Below, one piece after another: positions 127 to 58,200 of a DNA stretch of 64,000 bases. Position numbers and translations under genes: made by a program. The DNA lies in the NCBI GenBank assembly GCA_965240325.2, contig OZ251223.1, positions 3,162,001 to 3,226,000 of the forward strand. Direction: 5' to 3'. Numbering within the stretch: position 1 is the first letter of the stretch; every line of letters starts with the position of its first letter. The stretch comes from Rebecca billardiae RCC1528. Taxonomy: Eukaryota > Protista > Haptophyta. Below the pieces are notes generated by a model. The model was not told the DNA's origin. It was given only the letters and a program-made list of their open reading frames with translations, and ran no database searches.

Positions 127-2064
127 TCAGGCTGTGCGAACCCCTGCCCCTGGCGGCCGAGCCAGGTGCGCCGCGAGCCGCAGCGCACACGCCCACGGCG
201 CATCGCAGCCAAACCACGCCGCCGTGCACGCGCGCACGCGCGGCGGCGCCCACACAAGCTGCAGCGTGAGCGACGCCGAGGCGAGCGTGCTCGCGACGCG
301 AAACGCCCGGCGGTAATGGCGCTCAGCGGGCAGCCGCTCGACAGCCGCGGCCGCGATCAGCGCCGCGTGGAAGAGCGACCACGCGAGCGCGAGCACGCGC
401 GGCTGCCACGAGTGGCTGAGCAGCAGCCGCCATGTGCTGCTCAGCACGACGCCCGCCATCAGCGCCTGGCCCAGCGACTGCGGGAAGCAGTACGCGGCGC
501 ACGCGCACGCCGCGCCAACGACGAGCGCCGGCAGCAGGCCGCACGTCAACAGCCTCTCCGCATACTCCACCAGCCCGGCGCCGTCGCCCGTCGCAAGCGC
601 CCACGCGAGCGCTGCCGACGACGGCGGCGCCAGGGTGACGCCCTCGCACTGCTCCGGCTGGAAGGCGCGCAGGCCGGGCACGGAGGCCCACACCGCCGCG
701 GGCTCGAGCGCACACGCGCTCCACGCCACGCCGACGAGTGCCAGACCCGCCCTCGCGCACGCCCAGAAGAACGCGCCCTCCTCGAGCGCGGCCTCCGAGC
801 GCTCGCGCTGCGCGCTCGACTCGCGCGCCGCCGTGTCGTGCGCCGCGCGCGCGCTCTCGACGCGCTGCCGGCGCAGCTCGCGCAAGGCGGCGACGAAGGA
901 CACGGCGAGCTGCTGCTGCTCGCGCGCGCGCGCGGCCTCCTGTGTCTTCGCCTCGCGCCGCGTCGCCTCCTGTGCCTCGAGCTTGCGCAGCCGCTGCGCC
1001 CACTGCTCGCGCCGCGCCGCCCAGATGGGCGTGGCCTGCGCGGCCGCGTCCTCTGCTGAGTAGCCGCTCTCGCGCAGCTCATCGCGGATGGCGGCGACCG
1101 CGCCGGTGAGCTGGCTGGCGTCGAGGCGCTCGCTGAGGTGCGCGGCCTCGGCGCGCGTCGCCTCGAGCGCGCGCTCGTGCTGCAGAGCGGCGCGCGCGTG
1201 GCCGTGCGCCTGCCGGTACGCGCCTTGCAGCTGGGTGGCAAGGCGGCGGGCCTCGTCCGCGCCCGCGCCCGCGTCCGCGCCCGCTGCACTGCTGGGGCTG
1301 CTCAGCCAGCTGCGGCCGTCCAGCACCGCGGCAGCGCTGCTGGCTCCGCCGCCGCAGGCACCTTCGGGCATATCTGAGACGCGGAGATCAGCGTGTGGCG
1401 CGTGAAGCCAGTCGCTGCAACCCGCGCTCGTCGACGAGCTGCTGCTGCATCCGCCGCCGGCGCCGCTCGCGACGAGCGCACGCGACGCTCCGGCCGTCGC
1501 CGACTCGGCGGTGCGGTGGCTGATGGCCGCTGCTCGTGGCGCCAGGCACGTGCACACGTCGTGCTCGACCGCGGCTAGCTGCTCATTCTCGAGCCGCTGC
1601 CGCTTCTCCTCAGCGCCGAGCGCCGCGTTCGCGCGGGCGAGGCGGTCTGAATCCCGCGCACCGTGCGCAGCACGAGCAGCGTCGAGCGCTGCGCAGCGCA
1701 CCGGGTCTGCCCGGCCCAGCGCGGCGCCGATCGCGTACAGCCGGTTCGCCTGCTCAGCTTGCAGACCTCTCCGCTGAGCCAGCTTTAGGAGCGCGACAGC
1801 GCGCCGGCGGCGCCACAGGCGCCCGGCGAACCACCAGCACACGATCACCGTGAGCGGCACGAGGGCGGCCGCTGATGGGGCCAGCGTTTGGCCGTCTGCA
1901 CGCGCGGGCTCAGCCGAGTGACGTGCGTCGCTGCCGATCGGCGAGAAGAGTCGTGCAGAGGTGCCACTTGCGAAGCAGCAGGCGGGCAGCGGCTCGCCCG
2001 GAATCCTCCCAGGCCGCGTCGGGTTGCACTTGGCTGAGGCCGTGCAGTCTTGCCCGCCCGCCAT
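127..2064 (-). CDS. Hypothetical membrane protein: N-terminal TM, long coiled coil, C-terminal multi-TM region
   Basis: 645-aa open frame with host-like GC3 bias. Hydrophobic ALVPLTVIVCWWFAG, then E/R/A/Q-rich heptad segments, then about 5 hydrophobic stretches. No family recognised; start uncertain. Confidence 0.55.
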   Translation of the reverse strand: MAGGQDCTASAKCNPTRPGRIPGEPLPACCFASGTSARLFSPIGSDARHSAEPARADGQTLAPSAAALVPLTVIVCWWFAGRLWRRRRAVALLKLAQRRGLQAEQANRLYAIGAALGRADPVRCAALDAARAAHGARDSDRLARANAALGAEEKRQRLENEQLAAVEHDVCTCLAPRAAAISHRTAESATAGASRALVASGAGGGCSSSSSTSAGCSDWLHAPHADLRVSDMPEGACGGGASSAAAVLDGRSWLSSPSSAAGADAGAGADEARRLATQLQGAYRQAHGHARAALQHERALEATRAEAAHLSERLDASQLTGAVAAIRDELRESGYSAEDAAAQATPIWAARREQWAQRLRKLEAQEATRREAKTQEAARAREQQQLAVSFVAALRELRRQRVESARAAHDTAARESSAQRERSEAALEEGAFFWACARAGLALVGVAWSACALEPAAVWASVPGLRAFQPEQCEGVTLAPPSSAALAWALATGDGAGLVEYAERLLTCGLLPALVVGAACACAAYCFPQSLGQALMAGVVLSSTWRLLLSHSWQPRVLALAWSLFHAALIAAAAVERLPAERHYRRAFRVASTLASASLTLQLVWAPPRVRACTAAWFGCDAPWACALRLAAHLARPPGAGVRTA

Positions 2065-2743
2065 GCTTAGCCGTCCAACTTTTCAAAATGACACTTCGTG
2101 GATTGTCCGGCTGGTGTGCCGCCGACCGGCGACCGCCGTGCGTGCGCGACAAGGGCCAAGGCGGATAATCACATGACGATTATGATGCATCACTCATCAG
2201 CTAGGACAGTAGGCTAGGTTGCCTTAATTAAGTCTAAGAACGAAACACTGGCGTCGCTGTCGTCAGACCGCCGGGCCCGGGACCGCGGGACGGCGCTGCC
2301 GGCGCCACACTGGACACAGGGGCCTCGCTCCGTCGTCTGTCGGGCTGGCAGTCTGAGTCTCATTCCGATCATCAAGCCTGTACGGCTACGGCCCGAAGCC
2401 TACTGCTACGGGGTCCGCGTATACGGCTCACGCACCGCGGGTACGGCGAGTGCGGTACGGACACTACGGTAGTCGGTACGAGGCCGAGCCGTGCGCCCCG
2501 GCGGCTCTAACTGGCTCTAAGCGGCTCACTGTCAGACTCTCCGGGTCAGCGTGGACGTGACCCGCCATTCCGCCGGTCATCACCTAGGCCTAGCGGCTAG
2601 CTGCACCTCATGTGTCACGGCTCACTTGACACTTGACACTTGTCAATGTCAATTGTCATCCCGTCGGATCCGCGCTCCAGAGTCCAGACTCGGCTCGGCC
2701 TCGGGACCGCTCGGGCGGCGCCGTGCCCGGGTGGCGTGGCGCG

Positions 2744-4874
2744 TCATGCTGCCAGCGCACCAGGTGCGACCTCGGCGCTGCTGATGGCGTCGGAGTCCAA
2801 GGACTCGTCGGTCGTCAGGCTGCTGACGGCGCTGAGGCCGCTGTCGCTCGTGCGCAGGACGCGCACAGTGACAAAGTCCGCCTGTGCCTCCAGGTCGTCC
2901 ACCTGGACGTCCACCTCGCTGTTTCGCACGGCGCTGTTGCGCTCATCGGGGCGCGCGCCGACTGCAGCCGGCGGCGCAGCGGGCGCCACCTCGATCGCGG
3001 GCATGATCCGGATTGTCGAAGCACTGCTCGCTGTCAGCCAGCTGCCACTCCTGGGGCTCTGGAGCCACTCGCATGCCGCCGCAACGTGCGCGCCCCTGAA
3101 GCTGCCCTCGCCGGACGGCCGTCGGCAGGGAGGCATCACGCCGAACGCGCTGCCTCCTGCGGGCGCGGGGAGGGTGAGGCTGGGTGTCTTGCTCTTCTGC
3201 GAGCTGGAGCGCCGAACCCTCCGACGCCACGACGAGTCGGAGACCAACTCCTGCGGCGCTGCACCGGCGCCCCGCAGGCTCGCTGGGCGCGAGAGGCACT
3301 CGAGCAACGTCTCACGCACCGCCTGATTAAAGCCCGCGATGCCGCCCGCGCCCGCCTCGATCACGGCGAGCAGGCGGTCGGTGTCGGCTTGCATCGTGCA
3401 CGTCGCCCGCTGCACGTCGTACTCCTCGATCCGCGCGCGCATCGCCCTGTACCGCAGCTGCGGCGCGAGCGCAGGCGAGTGCAGCAGCAGCACCTCGACG
3501 CCCGCGCGGTCCGCGCCCATCAGCATGAACATCGAGAGCTCGCTCGCGCACCACATGCGCTCGAGCGTGGTGTCGCCGAGCAGGAAGAGGAGCTTCGACG
3601 CGGTGGCCAGCCAGATGGGCAGGCACGCCAGCGCCTGCGAGATGTCCCGCTGCCCGCCGGCGGTCGTGGGCCCGGGCGCGATGCACGCGCGGTCGAGCCA
3701 GATCATCGGCTCGCGCCCCTCCTGCAGCACAAACAGCGCGCGCCACTCCTGCAGCGCGGCGAACTTGGCCGCGCCGTCGTCGCTCCACTGCGGGGGGGAA
3801 GCGCGCGGGGCGGCGCGTGGGGCGAGGGAGGGGCAACGCGGCCGTCAGCGGTCGAGCGCGCGCGCACGGGCCGGACCACAGCGCGCCGCCCACCAGCTCC
3901 AGCGCGCCGCGCCCGCGCCGCACCGAGTGCGAGACGAAGGCGTCCACATCGCCGTAGTTCCCAGGCTGCGAGCGCTCGTACAGCGTCGCGCTCGGAGTCG
4001 AGCTGCTCAGGTCGTCCACGCGCAGCTCGCTGATGGCGATGCAGCGGAGCGTGGAGCGAGCGAGCCGCTCCGCCTCGCCCGCCGAGAAGCGGCCGAGCAG
4101 GCTGCTGAGGCCGACCGCCGTGCGCTCCTCCCCCGTGCGCCTGCCCAGCCAAGCCTGCACTCGCCACTTGAGCCCCGGCAGGCGCATCATCGCGCCGATG
4201 ATGAGGCACTCGGCGACGAGGACCGCGCGCAGGGCGATCACTACGGCGCCGTTGTGCCCGATCTGCGTCTCGGGGCGGTACCACGCCACGAACGCGTACG
4301 AGCCGAGGTTGGCACCGGTGAACAGCAGGCTGTCGGAGGTGAACGTCCACAGACCGTCGTGCATCGCGCGCAGCGTGCGCCTGAGCGTGAGCGCGTGGCG
4401 CACGCTCTGTGCGACGAAGAAGAGCACCGCTGCAAGCGAGTGCAGGGCGACGAATTGGGAGTACCAGCACGGCACGGGCCTGCGCGACACGGAGACGCAC
4501 GCGAGGTCCGAGTCCGAGAGGAGCGGTGAGAGCACTCTCTCGACCATGGCCACGCGGAGAGCGGCGAGGACGAGGTACACGACGGCGGCACTGACGGCGA
4601 GGACGGGCACGAGGATTCGGTCCCTCGGCAGGGTGCCCAAGATGGCGCACACGGCGCCGGGCAGCACGCACACGTAGCCATACAGCTCGTTGAGGTATGC
4701 GATGCGCAGGCCCACACCGATCGAGACAAAGACTGCAGAGGCCAAAAAGGTGGGCGTGCGCACCCTTGCCTCGAATCGGCGGCCTGCCGCTTGCGCCGAC
4801 TCGAGGTGCTCGCGCACCGCGCGTATGCTCGCCTCCTCGCGCACGAGTTCGAGCGTCTGCGGTGTGCTCGCCAT
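2744..4874 (-). CDS. Multi-pass (about 6 TM) membrane protein with C-terminal TIR-like domain; 2 exons, about 664 aa
   Basis: Removing intron 3788-3923 (GTGCGG...CCGCAG on minus) joins DAFVSHS|WSDDGAAKFAAL...IWLDRACI...LPIWLA...RMWCASEL, the SHSW / WLD-x2-CI / WC-x2-EL signature of TIR-like domains. Six hydrophobic segments in exon 1. Confidence 0.8.
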
Positions 4875-5241
4875 GTGACCCCCCACCAACATGCGAGCGA
4901 GGCGCGTCGAGTGATTGCGCGGCGGGAAAGGCTGCGAGATGGCGAGATCGACGAAGAACTTACAAAAATACCGCCAGGGTATTTTATATTAACGACGTGG
5001 TATGCAACGGGCAGGCGTCAGAGTCAGCAAGCTGTAGCAGCAGATCGAGCAGCAGAGACAAACACCAGGATCAGCGCTCCTCGCCGTCGTCCCCCCCCTC
5101 ATAGTCGCCCATCACTCCTATATAAGCCTTTTCAGCCAATTGGTAATCACTTCTTGAACAGTAGTTTACGTTACGAGGACTGGCGCCGGATGAAATAATT
5201 AGGAGAGCTTCATCATATTCGGCATCGAGCGGCTGCTGACC

Positions 5242-5905
5242 GAGGCCATTCCACCGAAATCAGCCGGCGGGTGGGGACCCCAGAAGCGCCTTCGGGTGGG
5301 GAGGTCCCCACCCGAGCGCGCACTCGGGTGGGGAGGGCGAGCTCCGCAGTGCGCGGCCGCCGGCGACGCGCACCGCGGTCGTCGCTCGAGTCTCCGCGGC
5401 GCGCGCGCGAGTCTGCGCGGCCCGCGCGCGCGTCCTACGGGCGCGCACGGCCAATCTGCCCTCGCGCGCCGCTGGCTGCGCGCCTCTCCGCCGCTCACGC
5501 CGCTCGCCAATGGCCCGCGACTGCGCGTCGGCACGTTTGTCTGCTGCGGCCGACCGCGAACGCGCACAGGCGGGCACAAGGAAGTCGGACGATGATTTGC
5601 TGTCGTGTTGTGCGCGGACCATGTGTATGCGCTCCGCCCAGCCGCGCGCGTCGGTCGCGCACGCCGACCAAGGCGAGCTCGAGCGCGCGCGCAAGCTGGC
5701 GCTCGCGCGTTTTGGACCCATGAAGGTGCCAGCGACTCGAGCGCGCCCAAGCGTCGGTAGAGCGCGCGGCGCGCTCGCGCGAGGAGCTGTGTGGTCGCAG
5801 ATCGCCCGCAGGCTTGCGCCCTGGGCGATCCGCGCCCTCGCATGCGCCAGCCGCGCGAGGCAGCGGCGCGTCGCACATGCCGGCCGCGCGAGCGCAGCGC
5901 GCGCC
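5242..5905 (+). repeat. Left 664-bp inverted repeat arm
   Basis: Near-identical translated ORFs on opposite strands (e.g. 5495..5878- vs 7570..8073+); direct sequence comparison of both ends. Confidence 0.95.
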
Positions 5906-7662
5906 TTGCTACCTGTAGCCTACTCGATGCCATTAGACAACGGTGCTAGTCAATCTGAGTCATAGGCTGAGACAAGGGGACAGCATGCTCGCGGGACCAA
6001 GAGCGTGTCAGACGCGGGCATTGTCACTTGAATATTGGCGCAGGTACGCTAGTTTCGGCAGTACAATGTACGCACGCGTCGCGGCCACACTTCGTTGCAT
6101 CGTGGCCGCCTGCGCTGTGGTCGACAGCGCCGTTCACAGCGAGCACATTGTCACACAGCGCCGCCTCAGACGCACGCCACGCCCGAATTGGCCACGTGCT
6201 GTGCCACTCACTCTGGCTGGTAAGCGCGCAAGAAGGCTGTGCGCGCAGAGTGTGTCCAGCTGCGCCGTGTTCCCGAGCACGGACCGCAGCAGCTGGGGGT
6301 TGGCGCAGGAGTCCGGACTGCGTGGCGCTGGCGCGGTGAATGCGCATCGGCGCGGCGATGGCGGTGCGTCAGGCACCGCCGATGGCTCCGCGGCGGCAAG
6401 TTCGTCCGGCATAGCCATCAGCTCTGTCAGAGACACTTCAGGCGCAACGACCGCACGCGCTCGTCAAGGCAACCGCATTGGCATCCAAGTCGTCCACGGC
6501 GGCAGCCTGGCACTGACTGGGACGACAAAGGCGCGGCGTCAGAGGCACTGAGTCGACACGACCGTGGCCGCCCGTGCCACCTCTTCGCCGCCGACACGCC
6601 GTCAACCGAAGATGAAGGGGCTGCTCGCGGCCGCCGAGGCCGCCGTTAGCCGGTCTGCCATCCTCTGCGTGCAGACTGCCACGAGGATGCGTGGGCTGCG
6701 GCCTGCGAGCACCGGCCGTCAGGCGGCCAGCCACCGCGGCGGCCGCGGGCCGATGCTGCTGATAAAAGCGCGGCGGCGCTGCGCGGCCCAGCGCAGCCCG
6801 TGTGACCTGAGCCTTGCGCGCCACCGCAGGCCGCGGCGGCGACAGGCCAAGTGGGCCGCGCGCGCGCGTCGCCGCGAGCCACCGCGGCCATCGGACTCGG
6901 TCTCATCCAGAGTCTCGCCGCAGTCAGCGGGCGGGCGCCGACGGGCCCGCCGACCGATCCCAGGGCAGGCGGCCGCGCGGCCGAGGCCGGTCCGCTGCGA
7001 CGGCATGCGCCGTGCAGCCCGCACCGAATGCGGTTCAATCACGACCACGACAGAAAGCTGCTCAGAGGCGTCGTACGTCAAGCCCCGTGCTCCATGCTGA
7101 GCCGACGTCACTGCGCCTGCCATACGTCAACGGCTGAGGGCCCTTGCCACTGAGTCCTCATCGCAGCATGAGTCGATCAATCAACACGCAGTCGTTGCCG
7201 CCTGGCGCCCAAGTTGCTCCTTGCCCACGCTCGCGTCTGCATCGATGCTGTGCAGAGCACTCCTTCGGGGCTATCGCTGGCGTTGATTCCGAACTGCGCA
7301 CGCAGCGACTCCATTCGAGATGAGTACGCGTGGCGCTGAACGCCCGAGTCAGTACCGGGCTGTACGCGTCCTCGTCATGACAGCCGGAGACGATGGTGGT
7401 GTCGTGTGGCGACTGGTTGCGCAACCCTCACCTGGCGACAGCAACGCAGCGCGGACTTGGGAGTCTGTCGTGACGATTCTGCAGATGTGCTATCCAAAGA
7501 CGAAGCACGTGCGAGGATCAGAAGAGGCTTAGGTGCGCCATCGCGCTGGTACACAACCTACCCGTTCAAGTGTACGCCCTGCGCGCCGTCCGCATCCTCG
7601 CGCAGGCTAGCACACAGCTGAGGCTCAGAGGCACACCAGCTGCGGCCGCTGCACGCAGGCTT

Positions 7663-8326
7663 GGCGCGCGCCGCGCTCGCGCGGCCGGCATGTGCGACGC
7701 GCCGCTGCCTCGCGCGGCTGGCGCATGCGAGGGCGCGGATCGCCCAGGGCGCAAGCCTGCGGGCGATCTGCGACCACACAGCTCCTCGCGCGAGCGCGCC
7801 GCGCGCTCTACCGACGCTTGGGCGCGCTCGAGTCGCTGGCACCTTCATGGGTCCAAAACGCGCGAGCGCCAGCTTGCGCGCGCGCTCGAGCTCGCCTTGG
7901 TCGGCGTGCGCGACCGACGCGCGCGGCTGGGCGGAGCGCATACACATGGTCCGCGCACAACACGACAGCAAATCATCGTCCGACTTCCTTGTGCCCGCCT
8001 GTGCGCGTTCGCGGTCGGCCGCAGCAGACAAACGTGCCGACGCGCAGTCGCGGGCCATTGGCGAGCGGCGTGAGCGGCGGAGAGGCGCGCAGCCAGCGGC
8101 GCGCGAGGGCAGATTGGCCGTGCGCGCCCGTAGGACGCGCGCGCGGGCCGCGCAGACTCGCGCGCGCGCCGCGGAGACTCGAGCGACGACCGCGGTGCGC
8201 GCCGCCGGCGGCCGCGCATTGCGGAGCTCGCCCTCCCCACCCGAGTGCGCGCTCGGGTGGGGACCTCCCCACCCGAAGGCGCTTCTGGGGTCCCCACCCG
8301 CCGGCTGATTTCGGTGGAATGGCCTC
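7663..8326 (-). repeat. Right 664-bp inverted repeat arm
   Basis: Reverse complement of 5242-5905. Confidence 0.95.
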
Positions 8327-8445
8327 TGACCACCTGCCGCCGGTTGATGGCAATAATGATGATTAGTTGATTATCGAATGTTGTTGATCTCGCGCGGTTT
8401 TCTCGCCATAATCTCGGCGAGCTGCCCATCAAACCAGGTCGGGAA

Positions 8446-8586
8446 TCAACAGCCCGCGCCCGTGCGCTCGGTTGGCAGCAGGGGTGTGTGCACGTGCTCC
8501 GCGGAACACGATACACTCAACAGCCCGCCCGTGCGCTCGGTTGGCAGCAGCCGGCGGGGGGGATGCACGTGCTCCGCGGAACACGA
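8446..8586 (+). repeat. Two-copy tandem repeat, about 70-bp unit
   Basis: TCAACAGCCCGC..CCGTGCGCTCGGTTGGCAGCAG...TGCACGTGCTCCGCGGAACACGA at 8446-8511 and 8517-8586. Confidence 0.9.
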
Positions 8587-8764
8587 CCGCCGTCCGGGCC
8601 GGCTGTACCGTACACGTCGCCCGCGGAACGCTTACGCTCACGGCCCGAAGTTCCACGCGCCCCGCGAATCCCGCTCTCACAGCTGCTCAGTCACGGCCGC
8701 GAGTTTACCTTGCTGTGCCCTCCACCCGCCCCAGGATCCTCCCAAAGCCGTCCTGTCCAGGAGG

Positions 8765-8794
8765 GCTCATGACCTTCCGTGGAAGGTCATGAGC
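8765..8794. repeat. Palindrome, 14-bp perfect stem with 2-nt loop
   Basis: GCTCATGACCTTCC-GT-GGAAGGTCATGAGC. Confidence 0.9.
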
Positions 8795-9482
8795 TCCCGC
8801 GGACTCACAGTGCGCGCAGGCCGCCGCCTCGAGGCGAGATGAGCACCAAGGCCCGTCACAGGGCTCGTACACGCGCGCTTGACTGCGGCGGCTGAGATCG
8901 CTGGAGGGGTGGCGCGTTGTGCTCATCCTCAGTGCACACACGTGAGTGACCTTCGGCGCGGCAGACATGTGCCGCTGCTTGGGCCCTCCTCCGCCTCGGC
9001 TAGCGCGGTCGACGCCTCGACTACAAGTACTGCAACGGTCGCCAAAGCCAAGCGTTGCCTACTGAGTCCGCTTCTGCCCGTGGCACGCGCTTGAATGGCG
9101 CCTTGAGCGCGCGCGCATTGGAAACATATACACTGGCCCTCTCTCCAGATAGCGCGCGCCTCAGGGCTCCTGCAGCACATTCTGTGCGATGACGCAGTGC
9201 AGCGTAGCTAGGCGCCTGCCAGCCTGTTGTCGAAACGCACCAACTTGGCCAGTGAGCATGGGTGCAGACGACGTCGGGAAGCCGAGACATGAGCGCCGGA
9301 AGGGGTTACGAGGTACTACCAGACCAGCCAACCTGGCGCACCGTCGCACAGCCCTCGCCTACGCGCACCGGACGCACGACCCGAGCGAAGCTGCCCGCGC
9401 GGCGGACGGCCATTTCATTTCAAATGTTTTCGCGGAGTCAGTGGGCGGGCCCCCGACGGAGCTTGACGTACTGGGGCTGGGA

Positions 9483-37279: not shown

Positions 37280-40200
37280 ATGCGAACGGCGCCGCCCCGC
37301 CCACCGCGCGGCGGCTTCGACGATGACGACGACGATGGTGACGACCGGCAAGAGGCCGCTTTCTCAGCAAACAATCGCCATGACGAAGACGAGTACGACG
37401 CCGCGCAGGACACGAAGCTCGCGCGCCAGACGGGCCGGCTCGGCATGGGGCACACCGGCATGTTCGCGTTCGCCGGCCTCTTCGCCGACGACACGTGGGG
37501 GCTGATGGGCGACTCAAGCGACGACGAGGAGCGTCGGCTCGACAACGATCTTCCCGTCTGGGGTGGCACGGCCGGCGCCACCGAGCGCGACGACGAGGCC
37601 GGCGCCGGCGCGCGCGCGTCCGACGGCGGCAGCGATGCCGGCGGCGAGGACGACGGTGCGGGCCGCGGCGGGGACAGCGAGGACGGGCTAGGGACGGGGC
37701 GTTCCTCGCGCTGGGCTGACGACGCGGAGCGCGAGGACGCGGCCGGCGAGCGCGGCTGGACGACCCTCGGCGAGCATCGCGGCGCGGCGCTCGGCTCGCC
37801 GAGGGGCGGCCGGCGCCGCGGCATCCTTGGCGGGCTCGGCGGGGAAGGCGTGGGCGGGGGCGCGGCGTGGTCGTGGGACTCGGCCGGGCTGACCGCAGAC
37901 TTCCGAGACGGGGCCGGCCTGCCGGACGGCCTGCAGCTCGCCGGCGCCGAGCCCGAGCTGGGCGAGGACGAGGACGGCACGCACAGCCTGCTGCTGCCCG
38001 CGGACGAGACGGTGTCGCTCACGATGTGCCTCGGGTACGAGCACGGCATCTCGCCGTGGACGCTGGAGGAGGACGGCAAGCTGCACGCGTACACGCTCGT
38101 GATCGCGCTGCGCCTCGACAACCTGCCGAGCACCTCGCTCCCGCTCTTCAACGGCGGGCCGGCCGCGCTCGCGAGCGGCGGCTCGAACAAGCCGGTCGAG
38201 TCGGTGCAGATCTTCAAGAACGGCGGCGTCGGCGCGCTCGGGCAGTGCGGCACGGCGGCGACGGCGCTCCGGCCGGGGCGCTTCACCTGGGTGGTGGTGA
38301 CGCGCAAGCCCGGCGAGCTCATCACCTACGTCAACGGCCAGCGCTGCGCCGAGGTCAAGCTCGAGTCGAAGGCGAAGGGCGACGGCAAGAAGGCGGAGCC
38401 GAACACGTCGTTTGCGATCGACCCGAAGCAGTGCGCGCTGCTGCCGTCGGCGGGCGGCGAGCTGTGCGAGCGCGAGGCGTGCGGCGTGGCGGTGAAGTAC
38501 GTCGCGCTGCGCACGCAGCACTGGAACGACGACAAGGTGCGCGAGGAGCTGCTCAAGGTGCGCAACACCGACGAGTTCGCCGAGGAGCGCGAGGAGTTCC
38601 GCGCCGCGCTCGCCGACCACCTCTCGCTCCAGCCGCTGTACGGCAAGCCGCCGCCCGTGTGGCTGCACCCGACGTTCTGCGCGGCGTTCGGCGACCACTG
38701 CATCGAGGGCACCGGCCTCGACGGCGCGGGCTCGGCGCACACCAGCCTCGAGTTCTTCGCGCTCGTGCTCAAGCGGATGCTCGCGAACCGCGCGCTCACC
38801 GCGCTGTTTGGCGCGTCGCTCTCGCACGCGGACTGGCAGACGTGCAACGCGCTGCTGCTCGCGCTGGACGACGCGAAGAAGCTGGCGCACCGCTTCGTGC
38901 AGTCGCTGTCGAACGGGCACGGCCGCATGTTCCTCTCGCAGCTCGTCACCTCCCTCAACAAGCTCAAGGTGGGCGAGGTGAAGATCGTGCCGTCCGCGCT
39001 GATGGGCGCGCCCATCTTGCTGCTCGTCGAGCGGCGCGAGCGCGCGCGCTGCACGGTCGTCGTGGTGTGCACCGCGCCCGAGCTGCTGGCGTACCACTCG
39101 GCCGACGCGACGGCGCTGCCGAAGCTCAAGTACCGCACGTGCCTCGTGCTCGACGACGTCGCCTGGGCCCGCGCCACCGACGAGGCGTTCTGGGGCCTCG
39201 TGTGGTACTGCGCGACAATCTCAAACGGCAAGGTGCGGCCCGAGCAGCTGCTGTACGAGGTGCTGCTCTCCTTCCTGGCGGGGCGGCCGCTGGACGACGC
39301 GCTGGGCGAGGAGGAGCGCGCGGGCGGCTCGGCCGCGGGCGCGGCGGGCGCGCCGTCCATGTCCGTGCAGAAGTCGAACACGGCGCACTACCGCACGATC
39401 TCGCACGCGGTGCGCCACCTGATGCGCGCGCGCGGCGTGCTGCCGCGCGCGCGCAAGCGGCTCATGCTGATGCTGCGCCTCGAGATGCTCTCGATGGCGT
39501 CGCACGACCTCGCGTTCGTGCGCACCGCCTCGCGCGCGGAGCGGCGCATCGTCGGCCTCGCCTGCCGCCAGGTCGCGCACCACACCTCCAAGCTCGCGCC
39601 CGACGGCGCGCGCGGCGCGGTCGACGCGCCGCTCAGCCTGCAGCAGATGGCCGAGATCAGCGGCCAGATCCGACGGATCGGCGAGCGGCTGGAGAGCGTG
39701 CCGAGCGGCGAGGGCGAGGCGCACGTCGCGCCGCCGCCGCTGATCCTGAACGAGTCGGAGCGCCACCTCGGCGCGCGCACCTGGACGCAGCTCGTCGGCG
39801 AGCGGCTGCTCGCCGGGAGCGTGCCCGCCGCGGTCGCGGCCGAGGCGGCGCGCGCGGGCGCGGACGCGGGCGCGGACGCGGACGCGCGCGCCGAGCTGCT
39901 CGGCCTCGAGCAGCGCACGGGGCTGCTCGAGGAGGACGCCGCCCCCGCGCTCGGCGCGCGGCGCGCGCGCGCCGAGCGCAGCGGCGGCGGCGGCGGCGGC
40001 GCGTCCGAGGAGGACCTGTACGCCTCGGGCGCGCCCTCGTCCGAGCTCGTGGGCGCGGAGGCCGCGCTCGGCGCCCAGCAGGTGGTCGCGCTCTACTTTG
40101 GCGCGAGCTGGTGCCCGCCGTGCCGCCGCGCGACGGCGATGCTGCAGAAGCTGTACGGCCGGCTGCGCGGCGCGGGCCACCGCTTCGAGGTCGTCCTCGT

Positions 40201-49200: not shown

Positions 49201-52200
49201 GCTGCTGCGCAAGCAGCCGCTCACGATCCACTGGTTCCTCGAGCAGATGATCTTCCCCGCGTTCATGCAGCACCAGGTGACCAAGCTCTCCGCGTCGGGG
49301 CAGGAGGTGGGCGGGGAGATGCTCTTCTCGACGAGGCTTGGCTTCTCGGGCACGCCCTCGGACCTGCTGCCGCGCGCGCTCGGCCGGTGCGGGTACGAGA
49401 AGGGCTCGGACGGCAAGATGCTCTCGGTGCTCACCGACGCGGAGGTGGTCTCCTGGACCGTGATGGAGCACGGCTGGACCGTCGAGACGCTGCTCACGAC
49501 CGTCGCCACCCTCGAGCCGCGCGTGCACGCGCTCATCGACACGGGCGCGCTCATCACCGGCCTCAACAACCTGCAGGTCGCGCAGTTCCTGCTGCGCGTG
49601 CCCGCGTTCGCCGCGTGGTGCGAGGGCGTGGTCTTCCTCGACGAGGCCGACCAGAAGATGATCTACGTCCGCTCCACGCGCCGCGTGCTCAAGCTCTCGC
49701 AGTCGGGCATCTCGCCGCACGCGCGCTTCACCTTCTTTGACCAGGTGCACACGACGGGCATGGACATCGCGCAGCACTCGGACGCGCGCGCCGTGCTCAC
49801 GCTGGGCAAGGACATGAACTTCCGCGACTACGCGCAGGGCGCGTTCCGCATGCGCGGGATCGGCGCGGGGCAGAAGATCTCGCTGCTCCTCATCCCGGAG
49901 GTGCAGGGCCTCATGTGCAGGCAGCTCGCCAAGGCGGGGTACGCGCGGCGCGCGCTCGCGCTCGCGCACGCCGACGAGCCGACGGCCGTCATCGCCGCCG
50001 CCGCCGCCGACGCCGACGCCGACGCCTCGGCGCCGCTGGTGCTGCAGCTGGAGGACGTGGCCGCGTGGCTGGTGATCAACTCGATGAAGGCGGAGACGAC
50101 GCAGTACGACCAGCTCTGCTCGCAGAACCTCGCCAACGTCTGGCGGCTGAGCGCGTTCAGCGAGCTGATGCGCGGGTACACGCACTTCAAGGTGCGGCCC
50201 GAGGACGCGCACCAGTTCGTGCTCGACTCGCTGGGCCACGCGTTCCTCTCGGCGAAGCTGGGCACGACGGGGCGCGGCGCGATCGAGGGGAAGGCGGTCG
50301 CGCTCTTCTTCGGCGCGGTCGGCGACGACTCGGACGCGGGCGACCTCGAGATCGACGCGGACCTGGTGAACGCGGTGCGCACGGCGCACGGCCAGTTTGG
50401 GCAGAGCTTCGAGGTGGTGTACGTCTCCTCCTCCGCCTCGCTCGAGTGGTTCAACGACGCGTTCGGCGAGATGCCGTGGCTCGCCGTGCCGTTCACGCAC
50501 TCCGCGCGGCGCAAGCTGCTGCGCGAGACCTTCGGCGTGGGCGAGCGCGCGCAGGTCGTGCTCATCGACAGCGACGGGCACACGATCACGCGCGAGGGCG
50601 CGCGCCTCTTCCAGCTCGCGGCCGCGTGGGAGGCGGCGGAGAAGGCGCACGCGGACAAGCTCAAGGGGATGGAGTACGAGTCGGAGGCGAAGGGGAAGGA
50701 GGCGGCGCTGCTCGCGAAGGAGGAGGCGCGCATCGAGCCACTCCGCGCCGCGCACAAGCGCGCCCTCCGCTGGCTAAGCGCGCTCGGCCCAGACGAGCTG
50801 GGCGAGGTGCGCGCGTTTGCGAGTGCGCCTGAGGTGCCCGAGGCCGTGCAGGCGACGCTCGACGAGGCGACGGCGGCGCACGGCCGCGCGATCGAGGGCG
50901 TGCGCGCGCTGACGCAGTCGCAGGTGGAGCAGCTCGCCGCGCCGCCCACCGCCAGCGGCCCGCTGCTCAGCCTCGCCGCCGTGCTCTGCAGCTTCTTCGG
51001 CGTGCGCCCCGACTGGACGTCCTTCCGCGCCAAGCTGGCGGTGTTCCCCGGGCTGGTCAGTCGCGTGGCCAAGTTCGAGCCGAGCCTCGTGCAGGGCGCG
51101 GCGAGCCGCGCGCTGCAGCGGTACGTGGGCGGCGTGAGCGAGGCTGACGCGCCCGCGCTGGGCATGGCGGGCGGCGTCGCCGCGCTCGCGCTGCACCGCT
51201 GGGTGCTCGCGCTCGGCGCGCTGCTCGAGGCGAGCGACGAGGCGCGGCGCGCGACCGAGGTGTCAGGCGCGAGCGCGCTCATGCGCGGCGCGTGCGCGTG
51301 CGCGTGCGACCTGCTCGGCCTCGAGGACGTGCACGACCTGCCCGGCCTGCTCGCCGTCGCGATGGCGGCGGGCGGCCCGCTGCCCGCCGCGGCGCTCACC
51401 GCCGCGCACGCCGCGGACGCGCCGCTCGCGCCCGGCCCGGCGGCCGGGCTCGTCGCGGGCGCGGACGCGGGCGCGTGCGCGGACGAGGAGGAGGAGGAGG
51501 AGGGAGGCGACGCCGCGTCGATCGAGGCGGCGCAGTCGCGGCTGATGCGGATGCGCCAGTTCGCCGCGATGCTGGACAAGGACATCAAGACGGCCAAGCT
51601 CGCGGGCGCGCCGCTCCTCGAGCGCGCCGCGACGCAGGCCGGCCGGCTGAGCAACAAGGCGGCCGCGTTCGAGCGACTGCTCAAGGAGCCGGCTGCGCTC
51701 GAGTCGGACGAGGCGACGCGCGACGCGCTGCTCTTCACGTGCAAGGTGCTCGAGCCGGAGCCGCCGCGGGAGAAGGGGGAGAAGAAGGGCGCGCCGGCCG
51801 AGCCGCTGCTCGTGCAGGCGAAGCGGCTCCTCGGCTGGGCCGCGGGCGCGCCGGGCCTCTCGTACGCCGCCTTCTCCGCGTTCTGCGGCCGTCTGCGCGA
51901 GGTGCCCAACGAGATCGAGAACGGCCGGCTGCGCGTCGAGGAGTGGTCGCGCCTCGCCGCGCTCGCCTCGCGGCTCAAGATGGGGATGAAGGACAAGCAC
52001 GAGTACGACGGGAAGGCGGCGCACCCGTGCGTGCTCGAGCTCGCCAACTGGGTGACCGCGATCGGCGAGTACCTCGAGTCTTACTCCGAGCTGATGCGCA
52101 AGCAGAAGCAGCTCGAGGCGGTGCGCGCCGAGGCGGCCGCTGCGCAGCGCGAGCTCGACGAGAACCTGCAGAGCGCCATCGCCGCCGAGTCGTCGGCGCT

Positions 52201-55200
52201 GCCCGCCGACATCGACCCGCTCACGCTGCGCGCGGTGCGCAAGCGCGTGCGCCGCGCGGGCTTCAACGCGCCCACCGCCGCCGCCATCGCCGCGCTGCAG
52301 CACGCCGCCAACCGCGAGGACGACGCGGTGGCGCTGCTCGAGCAGGTGCCGACCGCGCGGCACGCGCTGCGCGCGCTCACGCAGCCCGAGCTGCTCGCGT
52401 GCGTCTCGCCCGGCGCGGTGTCGGCGAAGCAGCTGCGCAAGGTGGGCCGCGCGCTGCGCGAGGCCGAGCTGCGCGCGCACTCCGACGCGGTCGGCGAGCA
52501 CCTCGCCGCCGTGCAGGCGCAGGCCGACGCGTGGGCCGAGGCGCGCAAGAAGGCGGCCGCGCGCCGCAGGCGGCACGCGGCCGCGGCCGCGCGCGCGCGC
52601 GCCGCCGCCGCGCCAGCCGCGGACGGCGGCGCGGACGGCGGCGCGGACGGCGGCGCGGACGGCGGCGCGGACGGCGGCGCGGACGGCGGTGCGGACGGCG
52701 GCGCGGACGGCGGCGCGGACGGCGGCGCGGACGGCGGCGCGCCCGCGGCCGCCTCTGCCGTGGCGGCGGCCGCAGCCACCAAGCTGCGCGCGGCCGCCAA
52801 GCGGCGCAAGGCCGTGGCGCCCAAGCGCGCGCGCGCCCGCCGCGCGTACTGCGCGCAGCGTGCCGAGTGCGAAGGCAGCGGCAGCTCGGCCATCGCGGAC
52901 GAGGAGAGCGACGAGGACTTCTCGCCCTCCGAGTCGGAGGAGGACGGGCTTGAGCGCGAGGAGGAGTGGACGGAGGACGAGGTGGAAAGCGACAGCGACG
53001 AGGAGGACGAGGAGGAGGAGGAGGAGGACGACGACGACGACGACGAGGACGAGGACGAGCAGACGGCGGAGGAGGCGGGCTCGGAGGCGGCGAGCGCGCG
53101 CGGCAGCGCGCCCGCGGCCGCAGATGCAGAGGGCGGCGCGCCCGCCGCCGCGGACGGCGAGGCGGACGTGCCGGACGACGCGTCGGACGCGACGTACGTC
53201 GGCGCGGACGACACGCTCGTCGAGGTCGACGGCATCCGGCTCACGCGCGCCGAGCAGGCGCTGCTGTGCTGGGTGGTCGCCACCGCCTCGCTCGCGACCG
53301 CGCTGCAGGCGTCCGAGCCTCAGCGGCACAAGGTGTCCGCGCTCGAGAAGCGGATGGCGGCGCGCACGCGCGAGCTCGACCGCGCGCTCGCGCACAAGCA
53401 GAGCCGGCTGCGCGCCAAGGCGGAGCTCCTAGGCGTCCGCCCCTTCCCCCGCTGGGCTGACTTCCCCTGGGTGTGCCACAAGGCGCACTCGGCGGTCGAG
53501 GACGAGCTGAGACTGGCGATCGGGCTGCGCGACCTGCGCCGCCTGGACGAGCTCGTGCCGGGCGCGGAGGCGAAGGGGCTGCTCAAGGGGACGAGCGCGG
53601 TGCTGTTCGAGGCGCAGGAGCTGCGCGCGCTGCTGCGCGCCGAGGGCGCGGCGATGCGGCGCACCACCGAGCCCTCCCTGCACGAGCTCGACTGCGCGGA
53701 GGGCGGAGCCCCCTTCGGCGGCGACGCGGGCGCGCGCGCGGTGCGGGCGTCGAGCGCGCCCGCGCCCGCCGCGCGCCAGCCGACCTCGGAGCGCAGCGCG
53801 CAGCTCAACCGCGCGCTGGACGTGTTCCTCGAGCCCGTGCAGACCGAGGTGCTCGACGGCGTGCCCCGGCCGCGCCGCTTCGTCGACGTCCTCTCCGAGC
53901 GCGCGGACGAGTTCCTCGACTTTGTGCGCACGGCCGAGGAGATGGGCGTGGTGGCGGCCATCCTGCAGAGCGTCGCCGCCTCGGAGGGCGTGGGCGACAT
54001 CGAGACGGAGCAGTGCCGCGAGCAGGAGGCGGAGAAGGAGAAGGACCAGGAGCAGGAGCAGGAGATCGAGATGGAGCGGTACGCCGACCTCGCCTACCAG
54101 CGCGACGGCGAGGAGGTGCGCCGCTGGCCGCTCGCCGCGCTGGGCGACGAGGGCGCGCTGCTGGGCGCGGGCACGGTCTACCCGGCGTCCGGGCTGCGGC
54201 TCTACTCGCGCTCGCCGCTGCCCTTCCCGCCCGCGCTGCACGTCTCGCGCAACTACTTCGACCTGCACTGGGTGGGCGAGCGCCGGCTCAAGAACGTCAT
54301 CTGCGCGCTCGACTGGGCGCCCTCGGTGGCCGCGCTCGCGCCCGCGCCGCCGCGCCGCGCCGAGCTCTCGGCCGCGCAGCGCGACCGGCTGCGCAAGGCG
54401 GTGCGGCTGCTCGACGTGGACGACGCGGGGCACTTCGCGCCGGACAAGCTGGTCGAGGCGCTGCGCTCGGCCGAGGACATCTCGCTCACCGAGCCCGAGC
54501 TGCACGAGCTGCTCGCGCACGCGCACGCCTCTGCGCCCGCGGCGGACGGCGGCGCCGACGGCGGCGCCGACGGCGGCCGCGCGGCCGCGCCCGTGCACGC
54601 GCGGCCGCTCACGTTTGAGCAGCTGATGGGCGTGCTCACGTCGGGCGTGTACAGGCGCGAGCAGCTGGGCCGGCGGCGCGTGGTCGTGTCGCTCGCCGAG
54701 GCCGAGACGCTGCGCTGCGTGCTGCACCTGCGCCACGCCAGCGGCGCGCCGCTCGTGCCGGGCGCGGACGTCGGTCTCGCGATCCGGTGCGTGAGTGCGA
54801 ACGACGCGCTGCTCGACAGCTCGGCGGCGTGGACGCCGCCGCTGGAGTACGAGGGCGCGGCGATGCACAACTGCTGCCGCTTCATCGACTGCGCGATGCA
54901 CTTCACCCCCGCCGAGCTCAACGTGCTCCTCCGCTCGATCCCCGCCGAGCCCGCCCGGCGGCGCATCTGGTTCTCGCAGACGCTCGCGTGCCGCCGCCGG
55001 CTGTCCAAGCGTTGGGAGCAGACGCCGCTCGCCAAGCTCTTCACGCTCGAGGACGAGTGGGCGATGCTCAAGCAGCGCGCGCAGGCGGTGCGCGTGCGCG
55101 CGGCGATCCGCGCGCGCGGTCTCCTGCTGCACGACGCCTTCACCAAGTTCGACGCCGACCAGAACGGCCTCCTCTCGCTGGGCGAGGTGTACGGCGCGCT

Positions 55201-58200
55201 CGAGTGGCTCCGGCTGCCCGAGCTCACGGCCGCTGACATCCTCTTCTTTGTGCGCTCCATCTCCAAGGAGGCGCACGTCACGTACGCCGAGTTCATCGAG
55301 GCGCTGTGCTCGCCCGAGGAGGCCGAGGCGATCCACCTCGGCGTCGGCGCGGGCGGCGACGCCGAGCGCGCGCCCGCCGCCGCCGCCGCGGTGGCGGCGG
55401 GCGCGCACGGCGGCGCGCCCGGCGGCGCGCCCGGCGGCGCGAGCGGCGCGGCGCGGCAGCGCTCCGAGGTGGTGCCGCGCGACGAGGCGGCGCTGCACGA
55501 CCTGCTGCACGAGACGCTCTCGTCCGAGCGGCGCGCGGAGGAGGCGCTCGAGCAGGCAGAGGCGCGGCTCGTGCAGCACGCCGCGAGCGCGCTCGAGGCG
55601 CAGTTCGTCGAGTCGGACTTCTCGTGGATGCGGCAGACGCGCCGCTCGAGCGCGCTCAACCCGCGCACGACGCGCACCTCGAGCTTCTACGACCTCTCGC
55701 GCGGCGTGGTGGGCTCGCAGGAGGGGAAGCCGCTGTGGATGGACGGGCGGGGGAAGTGGCTCTTCGTGCGGCACGGCGGGCTGCGCTGCCTCAAGGGCTG
55801 GCCCTCCACCTTCCTCGTCCTCCGCGTCCCCTTCCGCAAGAACGGCGGCGGCGTGCACCTCAACCAGTTCTCCGTCTCGCTCACGCTCAAGCTGGTGGAC
55901 GACGGGCCGCGCAACCTGCTCTCGACCGCGGGGTGGGACCAGTGGAGCACGGCGAAGGAGCACGACGAGGAGGCGCAGGTGCGCCGCGTCGAGACCGGCC
56001 ACGTCGGCTCGCTCGACGCGTACGGCGACGCCGACGCGCCCACGCTCGAGCCGGGCGAGTGGGTGACCGTCACAATCACCGTCGACACGGTCGTGGGCGC
56101 GCTCCGCACGTACATCAACGGCGAGCCCGCCGCGTCGCTCAACTCGGCCAAGGTGGGGAAGGACTCGCAGTTCGCGCTGAAGGGGCGGCTCGCGCTCTTC
56201 TTCTCCAAGCACAAGCCGTCCGACGACGACGACGACATGGACATGGCGTACTACGTGCGCGCCGCCGCGATCCACAACCGCGTGCTGAGCGCTGACGGCA
56301 TCCGCAAGGAGGCGGAGGTGCACCGCAAGATGCTCATCGAGGACGCGATCGGCGCGGCGCCGCGGCACTTTGGGCTGGCGCTGGAGGAGGCGCACGCGGA
56401 GGCGCCGTTCACGCACCTCGACGAGCTGCGCGCCAAGCTCAACGAGATGCGCGCCGCCGCCGACCGCGCGGCCAACGAGCTCTGGTCCGCGCTCGCGTGC
56501 AGAGACGAGCGCGCGGCCGCGGACGTGCTCGACGGCGCGTCCGCGCACCACCTGGCGCACCTGCTGCACTGGCGGCGGCGCGGCGTGCCGCCGGTCGCGG
56601 ACGAGCAGACCGCGCCGCTGGGCGAGACGCTGCTGCACCAGGCCGCATTCGCCGGCTCGATCCCGACCATCGAGGCGCTGCTCACCGAGGAGGCGTCGGA
56701 GGAGGCGCAGCGCGAGAGGGCGGGGCGGCCGCTCTCGCCCGTGCTCGAGCACGCGCACGCGCACGGCCAGCCGCACGGCCAGCCGCATGGGCAGCAGCAC
56801 GGCGGCGCGGCGGAGCCCGGCGCGGCGGAGCCCGGCGCGGCTGCGGCTGGCGCAGCGGCCGCAGCGCAGCCGGCGGCCGGTGCGGGCGGCGGCGGCGCCG
56901 CCGCCGCCTCGCCGCCTGTGCGCGTGCGCGTGCGGCTCGCCGAGCTCGCGCCCGACGTGGAGACGGCCGACCTCGTCGCGCTGCTCGAGCGGCACGGGGC
57001 GCGCGTGCTGGCCGGCAGCGCGGCCGTGGACACGGACGCTGCGACGCTCGAGTGCGCGGGCACCGGCGTGGCCGAGGTGGAGATGGCGCACCTGCCGGCG
57101 GCGCGCGCGCTGCTCGCGGTACGCGCGCCGCGCCCCGATCCGCGCGCGCCCACGCCACGCGCGCACGTGGCCTCACCGCCGCGCGCGCACGTCTGCACCG
57201 GCTGCGCTCGACCGCGGCGCCGCGCGCGTGCGCGCAGGCACTCAACGGCGCGACGCTGTGCGGCGCGGCGCTGCGCGCGACCGCGGAGCCCGAGCTGCCG
57301 CCAGACGCAGTGGAGGTGCCGCCCACGGCGCCCGCGAGCCCCAGGCATCGCGCGCGGGCGCACAGCCAGCCCAGGTCGCCCGCCGCGCGCGTCGCCTCGC
57401 AAGACGAGGGTGGCTGGGCGGCGGACGCGCGCCCGCGCACGCTCCCTCTGAACAGGCGCGGCCGACGCACCAAGTGCACGCCGCTGCACGCGGCCGCGGC
57501 CGCGGGCCACGCGGACGTGATTCGCATACTCCTGGATGCGGGTGTGCGCACGCGCCGGCGGCCGCGCGCGCCCGGCGCGGCCGTGCGCGAGAGGGGGGGA
57601 TGGGCTGGTCGCGGCGTCGCCTGCGCGGCCGACTGCATGCCACGGACTCACGGCTGCTGGGCGCCGCGCACGCGCTGCGCTGCCTGGTCCGCCGCGCGCA
57701 GGCGCTGCGGTCGAGCCGCTGTCCGCGGCCGGCCGCACGCCGCTGTACATGGCATGCAGCCGCGGCTGGGGCGACGCCGCGCTCGTGCTCGTCTCTGCAG
57801 GTGCGCCGCCGCCTCCGCCTGCCTGCCTGCCGCCGCGCGCGCCCGACCCCGCATCCGCGACTCTGCCGCCGTGGCCCGCGCCGCCAGCCCTGGGGCATGC
57901 TCCCGGGCAGGCTCTGCCGACGCTCACGCGACCCGCGCGCCCGTGCCCGCGCGCTGGCTCGGCCGCAGGCGCGGATCCGTACACCTCGTCGGCGGGCGAG
58001 GCGCCGCTCTCCCTGCTGCGCAAGTGGGGCGGCACCGAGGCGTCGACCGAGGTGTGCCGCAAGCTCGCCGCCGCGTGGGAGGAGGTGAGCGGCAAGGGCG
58101 CCGCCGAGGCCGCGGCGGTGCGCGCGGGCGTGGACGGCCAGAGCTCACGGGCAGACGACAGCGATAGCAGCAGCGACGACGAGGCAGCCCAGCGCGCGTC

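Follow-up and report, generated by a model that had tools for sequence, protein, structure and literature searches.

The microtubule-binding domain (MTBD) of dynein is a six-helix head carried on an antiparallel hairpin at the tip of the stalk (Pfam MT, PF12777; structures 6RZB, 6RZA, 6KJO, 2RR7 and 3ERR). The stalk lies between AAA4 and AAA5 of the six-AAA ring, and its two helices, coiled coils 1 and 2 (CC1 and CC2), are about 100 residues each. In the solved structures and papers searched, the dynein MTBD appeared only within dynein heavy chains; no description of it outside dyneins was found in that literature, and a 2026 review of microtubule-associated proteins mentions neither the MTBD, nor the stalk, nor dynein microtubule-binding. 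A second group, the giant proteins with the domains DUF3638 and DUF3645 (PF12340 and PF12359), carries a Walker A motif (GGGKT) and a DEVD box. DUF3638 appears in the literature searched only in lists of annotated domains, and no paper there ties it to a dynein-type module. Here we describe a protein in which the two come together, encoded in a 64,000-nucleotide stretch of the haptophyte Rebecca billardiae RCC1528 (GenBank assembly GCA_965240325.2, contig OZ251223.1, positions 3,162,001 to 3,226,000 of the forward strand). This whole stretch is called the window, and positions are counted from its first letter.

The whole region of interest is contained in one open frame that spans 37184-57451 (+) and has 6,755 codons; its first ATG is at 37280. 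By its Pfam domains the product, hereafter the carrier, is a giant DUF3638/DUF3645 P-loop ATPase (SF2/DEAD-like) and not a dynein. Profile comparisons and structure prediction identify in it two tandem modules derived from the dynein stalk/MTBD, followed by a truncated third, all in an ATPase without a dynein motor. The domain is a known one; what is new is its setting, which is tandem, conserved and without a motor. That the heads dock the carrier on microtubules is plausible, and we put the probability of this at about 0.6.

The carrier has in common with the DUF3638/DUF3645 giants both domains, the Walker A motif and the DEVD box, and its branch of that family adds thioredoxin-like, MTBD, EF-hand and LamG-like parts. 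Its first head, which we call unit 1, is homologous to the dynein stalk tip and has the same six-helix head on an antiparallel hairpin. Unlike dynein, however, the carrier has no dynein AAA domain, its head-flanking helices measure 22 to 58 residues, which makes its stalks a quarter to half the dynein length, and there are two and a half units in tandem per chain. Unit 1 also differs in having lost the lysines of helix H1, in an added Cys-rich helix, and in scoring below the Pfam MT threshold.

The dynein stalk-MTBD, hairpin included, appears from these data as a transferable unit: it occurs in tandem in an unrelated family of giant ATPases, and the same genome has it in a stand-alone protein, an EF-hand protein and a STAND NTPase. 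Should the heads prove to bind microtubules, they would open a first functional approach to the DUF3638/DUF3645 giants, which are unstudied, and they would be natural short-stalked, motor-free MTBDs with which to gauge the affinity that is intrinsic to the dynein head.

Dynein-type heads in a protein without a dynein motor

The features of the region, in the order in which they lie on the DNA, are as follows.

50618-50782, + strand: long helix that runs up to unit 1 (model residues 2-56, predicted local distance difference test (pLDDT) score about 95)
50762-50848, + strand: stub resembling a partial CC1 end, H1 and 'PP' (ALRWLSAL...VPEAV), by weak alignment
50840-51265, + strand, residues ~4553-4694: unit 1, a short antiparallel stalk stub and a six-helix MTBD, by profile and model (H1 to H6 at about nucleotides 50906-51214)
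51290-51310, + strand, residues 4703-4709: CxCxC motif, here ACACACD, on the helix that follows unit 1
51506-52219, + strand, residues ~4775-5012: unit 2, a half-length stalk-MTBD: a helix of 47 residues, then a degenerate head that resembles the MTBD (model residues 52-163), then a return helix of 58 residues
53234-53392, + strand: unit 3 remnant, an H6-like helix (LLCWVVA) and the start of CC2, by hhalign

An earlier sequence-only reading had quoted strings from this region as echoes of the dynein stalk, and all of them were found in frame within 37184-57451 (+). ALRWLSAL..VPEAV covers residues 4527-4555 (nucleotides 50762-50848), AIEGVRAL..WVLALGA residues 4569-4679 (50888-51220), LLFTCKVL..WVTAIGEY residues 4849-4963 (51728-52072) and LLCWVVA residues 5360-5366 (53261-53281). 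The dynein consensus given in that reading agrees with the consensus of 13 dynein stalks from the same genome, and its description of the echoes as lying between coiled coils matches the models, which put long helices on both sides of each head. The proposal that the stretches are of the dynein stalk/MTBD type holds for units 1 and 2 and for the LLCWVVA remnant, and is weakly supported for the first short string (P ~2e-3).

Unit 1 carries most of the evidence. As a single sequence it drew a blank in the Pfam scan and returned only noise in a phmmer search of the PDB. When residues 4510-4720 were searched against the genome with phmmer, a true dynein heavy chain was matched inside its Pfam MT region (E = 3.7e-6). 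A family alignment of 24 members, with no dynein included, was then used as a profile against the PDB; among the 60 matches shown there were only dynein heavy chains, each matched at its MTBD, with E from 6.5e-20 to 1.7e-7, and the best-scoring of these were single-headed inner-arm dyneins. Aligned by hhalign to the 13 dynein stalks of its own genome, unit 1 gave a probability of 98.5% (E = 3e-15). The top four clusters found for it in the ESM Atlas are Pfam MT clusters.

The predicted structure tells the same story. An AlphaFold2 model of unit 1, built from the dynein-free alignment, has a pLDDT of 90.2 and a predicted template-modelling score (pTM) of 0.76, and shows a helical head on a hairpin and not a plain coiled coil. 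Each of the 50 Foldseek matches shown is either a stalk/MTBD structure of dynein or a very long chain from an assembly that contains dynein, among them 6rzb_C with a template-modelling (TM) score of 0.70 at 3.2 Å. With VIA-align the top 11 entries are all dynein (Z = 14.9 to 11.4), and clearly unrelated helical proteins begin at Z = 7.5 and below. Isolated MTBDs superpose with Z of 13.3 to 14.5 over 138-148 residues at 2.9-3.5 Å (6kjo, 138 of 141 residues at 2.9 Å; 6rzb_C, 148 of 149 at 3.5 Å). The core signature of the dynein head is common to unit 1: the P-x loop before H3, a VEAVC-type H3, (P)DW/F, FD/FE, and L..WV in H6. Because profile, hhalign, model and structure matches all point to dyneins, sequence and predicted fold mark unit 1 as a genuine MTBD of the dynein type, carried on a short hairpin.

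The helix that follows unit 1 carries the CxCxC motif, which reads CECVCDLxGL in most orthologues; it is specific to the family and absent from dyneins, and could be a redox or metal site. It lies ~240 residues C-terminal of a thioredoxin-like domain that has no CxxC.

Unit 2 is more diverged. From three sequences its hhalign match to dynein stalks was weak (43%, P = 2.5e-4). With 16 family rows the probability rose to 92.7% (E = 4.2e-7) over 175 columns that run from the CC1 end through the head into CC2. The top three PDB matches of its profile are dyneins (E = 7.5e-4 to 4.5e-3), and its AlphaFold model, again from a dynein-free alignment, has a pLDDT of 88.8. Foldseek E-values were weak. 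In VIA-align five dynein stalk/MTBD entries rank first (Z = 13.1, 12.1, 11.8, 11.6 and 10.6), with 148 of 149 residues of 6rzb_C aligned at 3.0 Å. Profile and model together lead us to regard unit 2 as a second, degenerate stalk-MTBD.

The LLCWVVA stretch aligns in register with dynein H6 and CC2 (82%, P = 1e-5, 56 columns). The Pro-basic motif that starts dynein CC2 is kept there, as EPQRHKV in the window and QPQQQKV in orthologues. No head-like sequence was found before the stretch, and unit 3 is therefore a remnant. Against dynein stalks the first string, of 29 residues (4527-4555), aligns where it should, over template columns 109-145 (P = 0.0016), and it also aligns with the start of unit 1 (P = 0.003); the hhalign probabilities are 10-16%. 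This suggests that the opening part of unit 1 was partially duplicated within the protein.

The sequence-only reading had taken the protein that bears these units for a non-dynein ATPase, and the domain scores bear this out. DUF3638 (113.5 bits, cut-off 31) and DUF3645 (50.7 bits, cut-off 25) both pass their Pfam gathering scores, and the Pfam scan found no dynein AAA domain in the 6,755-residue frame. The ATPase core has a weak DEAD-box match in Pfam (E = 0.07).

The module in paralogues and orthologues

The genome assembly (72 Mb, 41 contigs) contains at least 20 ordinary dynein heavy chains in intron-free frames of 4-5 thousand residues; the organism is therefore flagellated. The phmmer search with residues 4510-4720 also found two paralogues of the carrier, one 45% and the other 38% identical, whose frames are 2,264 and 5,391 residues long. 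They have the whole neighbourhood in common with it: the ATPase core, the thioredoxin-like domain, and then the MTBD region.

When 1.84 billion proteins were searched with a profile built on the three paralogues, 93 matched at E <= 1e-3. In the 91 of these that were scanned, Pfam MT was present in 45 and dynein motor domains in at least 11. The best-scoring matches are orthologues, with Thioredoxin_8 first, then the MTBD region, and later EF-hand, LamG and Ank parts. The sole named orthologue is a 'pdi-like protein, partial' from Chrysochromulina tobinii; the others are environmental and mostly fragments. Among the orthologues scanned, Pfam MT recognized P0001 only, at 16.7 bits, which is below the gathering score of 24.

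In the MTBD tree the family's heads form one group (SH-aLRT 90), within which the three copies from this genome fall together (97). The sequence comparisons place the module already in the common ancestor of the DUF3638-family proteins. In the three paralogues and in the orthologues the MTBD always stands directly after the thioredoxin-like domain. A dynein fragment fused to the frame by misassembly was considered and rejected, because the same order of thioredoxin-like domain and MTBD recurs in two paralogues and in independent orthologues.

Microtubule docking and other readings of the heads

In the reading that we favor, the heads would hold the ATPase on the lattice of the microtubule in the manner of the dynein MTBD, and two heads per chain would allow avid or cross-linking binding. 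Dynein-like control by a registry shift in the stalk is unlikely because no AAA ring is attached to the stalks, which are also short. Binding that is constitutive, or tuned by neighbors such as the Cys-rich helix, the thioredoxin-like domain or the EF-hand, would be likelier. What speaks for binding is that the family as a whole has retained the fold and its hairpin, along with H3, H6, the (P)DW/F loop and some basic positions.

Basic positions were compared in a joint profile alignment, in which two positions of H1 are K in at least 60% of the 13 dyneins. The unit 1 of the window keeps a basic residue before PDW, one of the pair in H4 and, in H5, the Arg that precedes the aromatic residue. 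Several observations weigh against the docking of dynein-derived heads on microtubules. Unit 1 of the window has Q and A at both conserved H1 Lys positions, and the family consensus retains just part of the conserved basic positions, including the Arg at the end of H1. The net charge of the head, +3, does not discriminate (dyneins 0 to +6; family -6 to +7). For unit 2, other helical hairpins reach Z = 9.9, near some of the dynein entries (Z = 13.1 to 9.7), and Pfam MT gives its H6 just 8.8 bits (E = 1). Pfam MT (gathering score 24 bits) has no match at all to the unit 1 of the window. This last miss shows that the Pfam model is insufficiently sensitive for the DUF3638 family, and it is not evidence against homology. 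The module is therefore unannotated, and the proteins of the family are annotated merely as 'pdi-like' or hypothetical. A complex prediction of unit 1 with the genome's own alpha- and beta-tubulin scored 0.00, which in a run without controls is no answer and counts neither way.

The best-surviving competitor, to which we give appreciable though clearly smaller weight, is that the MTBD fold has been repurposed. The heads would then be scaffolds for a partner other than the lattice, such as free tubulin, some other filament or a different region of the carrier itself, and the likeness to dynein would reflect ancestry and not function. The lost H1 lysines and the only partly kept basic positions of the family fit this, as do net charges in the family as low as -6. 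Conservation across the family is highest at residues that form the core or set the fold (L, P, E, L, W, A); unit 2 has degenerated strongly, and of unit 3 a remnant is left; and unit 1 is followed by an extra Cys-rich helix that is peculiar to the family. However, the module and its hairpin stalk have been maintained in three paralogues and many orthologues, and H3, the (P)DW/F loop, the L..WV of H6 and several basic positions persist. Other non-dynein proteins of the genome carry the module too, suggesting a reusable functional unit.

The sequence-only reading had gone further and offered the carrier as a speculative candidate for a Ca2+-responsive flagellar or haptonemal component, docked on axonemal or haptonemal microtubules. 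We regard this as unlikely. The organism is flagellated, as judged from its dynein heavy chains; unit 1 finds its best PDB matches in axonemal dyneins of the inner arm; and one orthologue comes from C. tobinii, a haptonema-bearing haptophyte. There is one EF-hand-type loop, D-x-D-x-N-G at residues 5990-5997, ~1,000 residues C-terminal of the MTBD region. The EF-hand matches are nevertheless under the Pfam cut-offs (EF-hand_7, 26.4 bits against 30; EF-hand_6, 18.9 against 25), cytoplasmic microtubules are an equally possible target, and thioredoxin, SF2-like ATPase and LamG domains are without known axonemal association. No paper on a haptonema proteome was found in the literature searched.

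Longer odds still attach to the idea that two MTBD 'feet' and an SF2-type ATPase coupled on one chain would make a microtubule mechanoenzyme (a walker, lattice remodeller or cross-linker) that arose independently of dynein and of kinesin. Redox state, through the thioredoxin-like domain and the CxCxC helix, and Ca2+, through the EF-hand, would gate it, and the MTBD would be a mobile cassette that protists captured several times.

Chance resemblance, a plain coiled coil or Ala-rich low complexity echoing the dynein pattern, might be suspected in DNA of about 75% G+C that encodes an Ala-rich protein and in view of the blank single-sequence Pfam and PDB searches, but it is very improbable overall and is refuted for unit 1 by phmmer (the match of the single sequence to a dynein of its own genome), hhalign, the all-dynein PDB profile matches shown and VIA-align (a helical head on a hairpin that superposes on isolated MTBDs at about 3 Å), so that it is conceivable solely for the 29-residue first string.

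The rest of the carrier and other non-dynein carriers

The G+C content of the window is approximately 60-78%. The carrier has further features outside the units described above.

37184-57451, + strand: carrier gene, an open frame with Pfam domains
residues 966-1055, + strand: first Thioredoxin_8 domain, with WCPPC (Pfam)
residues about 3476-3693, + strand: DUF3638 (Pfam)
residues 3515-3522, + strand: Walker A motif, GGGKT, in the DUF3638 core
residues 3650-3655, + strand: DEVD box, in the DUF3638 core
50288-50581, + strand, residues ~4369-4466: second Thioredoxin_8 domain (Pfam, 31.4 bits), immediately 5' of the MTBD region
52286-52351, + strand, residues 5035-5056: UBA-like helix pair, kept in orthologues; match not significant
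52619-52747, + strand: (ADGG)n low-complexity spacer, through which the frame stays open, with an acidic tract after it
residues ~5982-6041, + strand: weak EF-hand pair (Pfam, sub-threshold)

Searches of the PDB and NCBIfam with the ATPase core were blank except for thiol-disulfide models on the first thioredoxin domain. The two LamG-like matches in the frame are both weak (Pfam). A word-indexed homologue search with the whole protein returned nothing for the region 4500-5480, which says little given its length window and fragmentary gene calls. The best PDB match of the UBA-like stretch is the Ddi1 UBA domain (E = 0.08, not significant). In-frame (ADGG)n repeats occur twice, about ten units at 52619-52747 and three near residues 5786-5797, and there is a long acidic tract at residues ~5240-5300. 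The final ~130 codons (~57050-57451, residues ~6620-6755) are Arg/Pro-rich and non-coding in look; a true stop, or an intron, may lie earlier than the end of the frame.

Dynein-type MTBDs without the dynein motor, as in the DUF3638 giants, were also found in several other proteins, of which L027, L029 and L017 belong to the same genome. L027 (G000:C32:40000-49900, frame 2497-8913 (-), 2,139 residues) has DUF4062, an AAA_16 STAND NTPase, a Pfam MT match of 29.6 bits and a YEATS-like end. L029 (G000:C7:104000-113900, frame 418-5097 (+), 1,560 residues) has an EF-hand pair near its N-terminus and an MTBD-like region at residues ~1364-1529, which is below the cut-off in Pfam MT (E = 6e-4) and is matched by the own-genome dynein HMM at E = 2e-15. 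L017 (G000:C12:1355858-1359340, frame 1363-2097 (+), 245 residues) is barely more than an MTBD and a short stalk, with 40.3 bits in Pfam MT; it matches the DUF3638-family profile at E = 1.6e-16, and its PDB matches are all dyneins. The public proteins P0016, P0021 and P0024, the last from a Picozoa single-cell assembly, have two or three tandem MTBD heads and neither stalk nor motor, their Pfam MT matches covering positions ~87-217 only. Two further loci, L026 (G000:C32:89000-98900) and L030 (G000:C21:108000-117900), encode 8,149 and 2,203 residues with stalk/MT and weak AAA_9 matches only, and are probably highly diverged dynein-like proteins.

The STAND, EF-hand, stand-alone and tandem-head carriers differ from the DUF3638 giants in architecture, most of them are recognized by Pfam MT, and the heads of P0016, P0021 and P0024 are stalkless. 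In the MTBD tree most of them fall among the dyneins, whereas the DUF3638-family MTBDs are a group of their own that the long-branched STAND protein adjoins.

In the VIA-align comparison of unit 1, MTBD-like folds were also seen in two apparently non-dynein chains of solved microtubule structures. Neither the Toxoplasma paper nor a sequence search with L017 settled the identity of these chains, which are 9e5c_2e, from the 96-nm repeat of the T. brucei doublet (Z = 9.9, 145 residues at 2.5 Å, 16% identity), and 9ya2_L, from the Toxoplasma intraconoidal microtubule (Z = 8.5). If these two chains are homologues, structures would already exist of MTBDs outside dynein that sit on microtubules.

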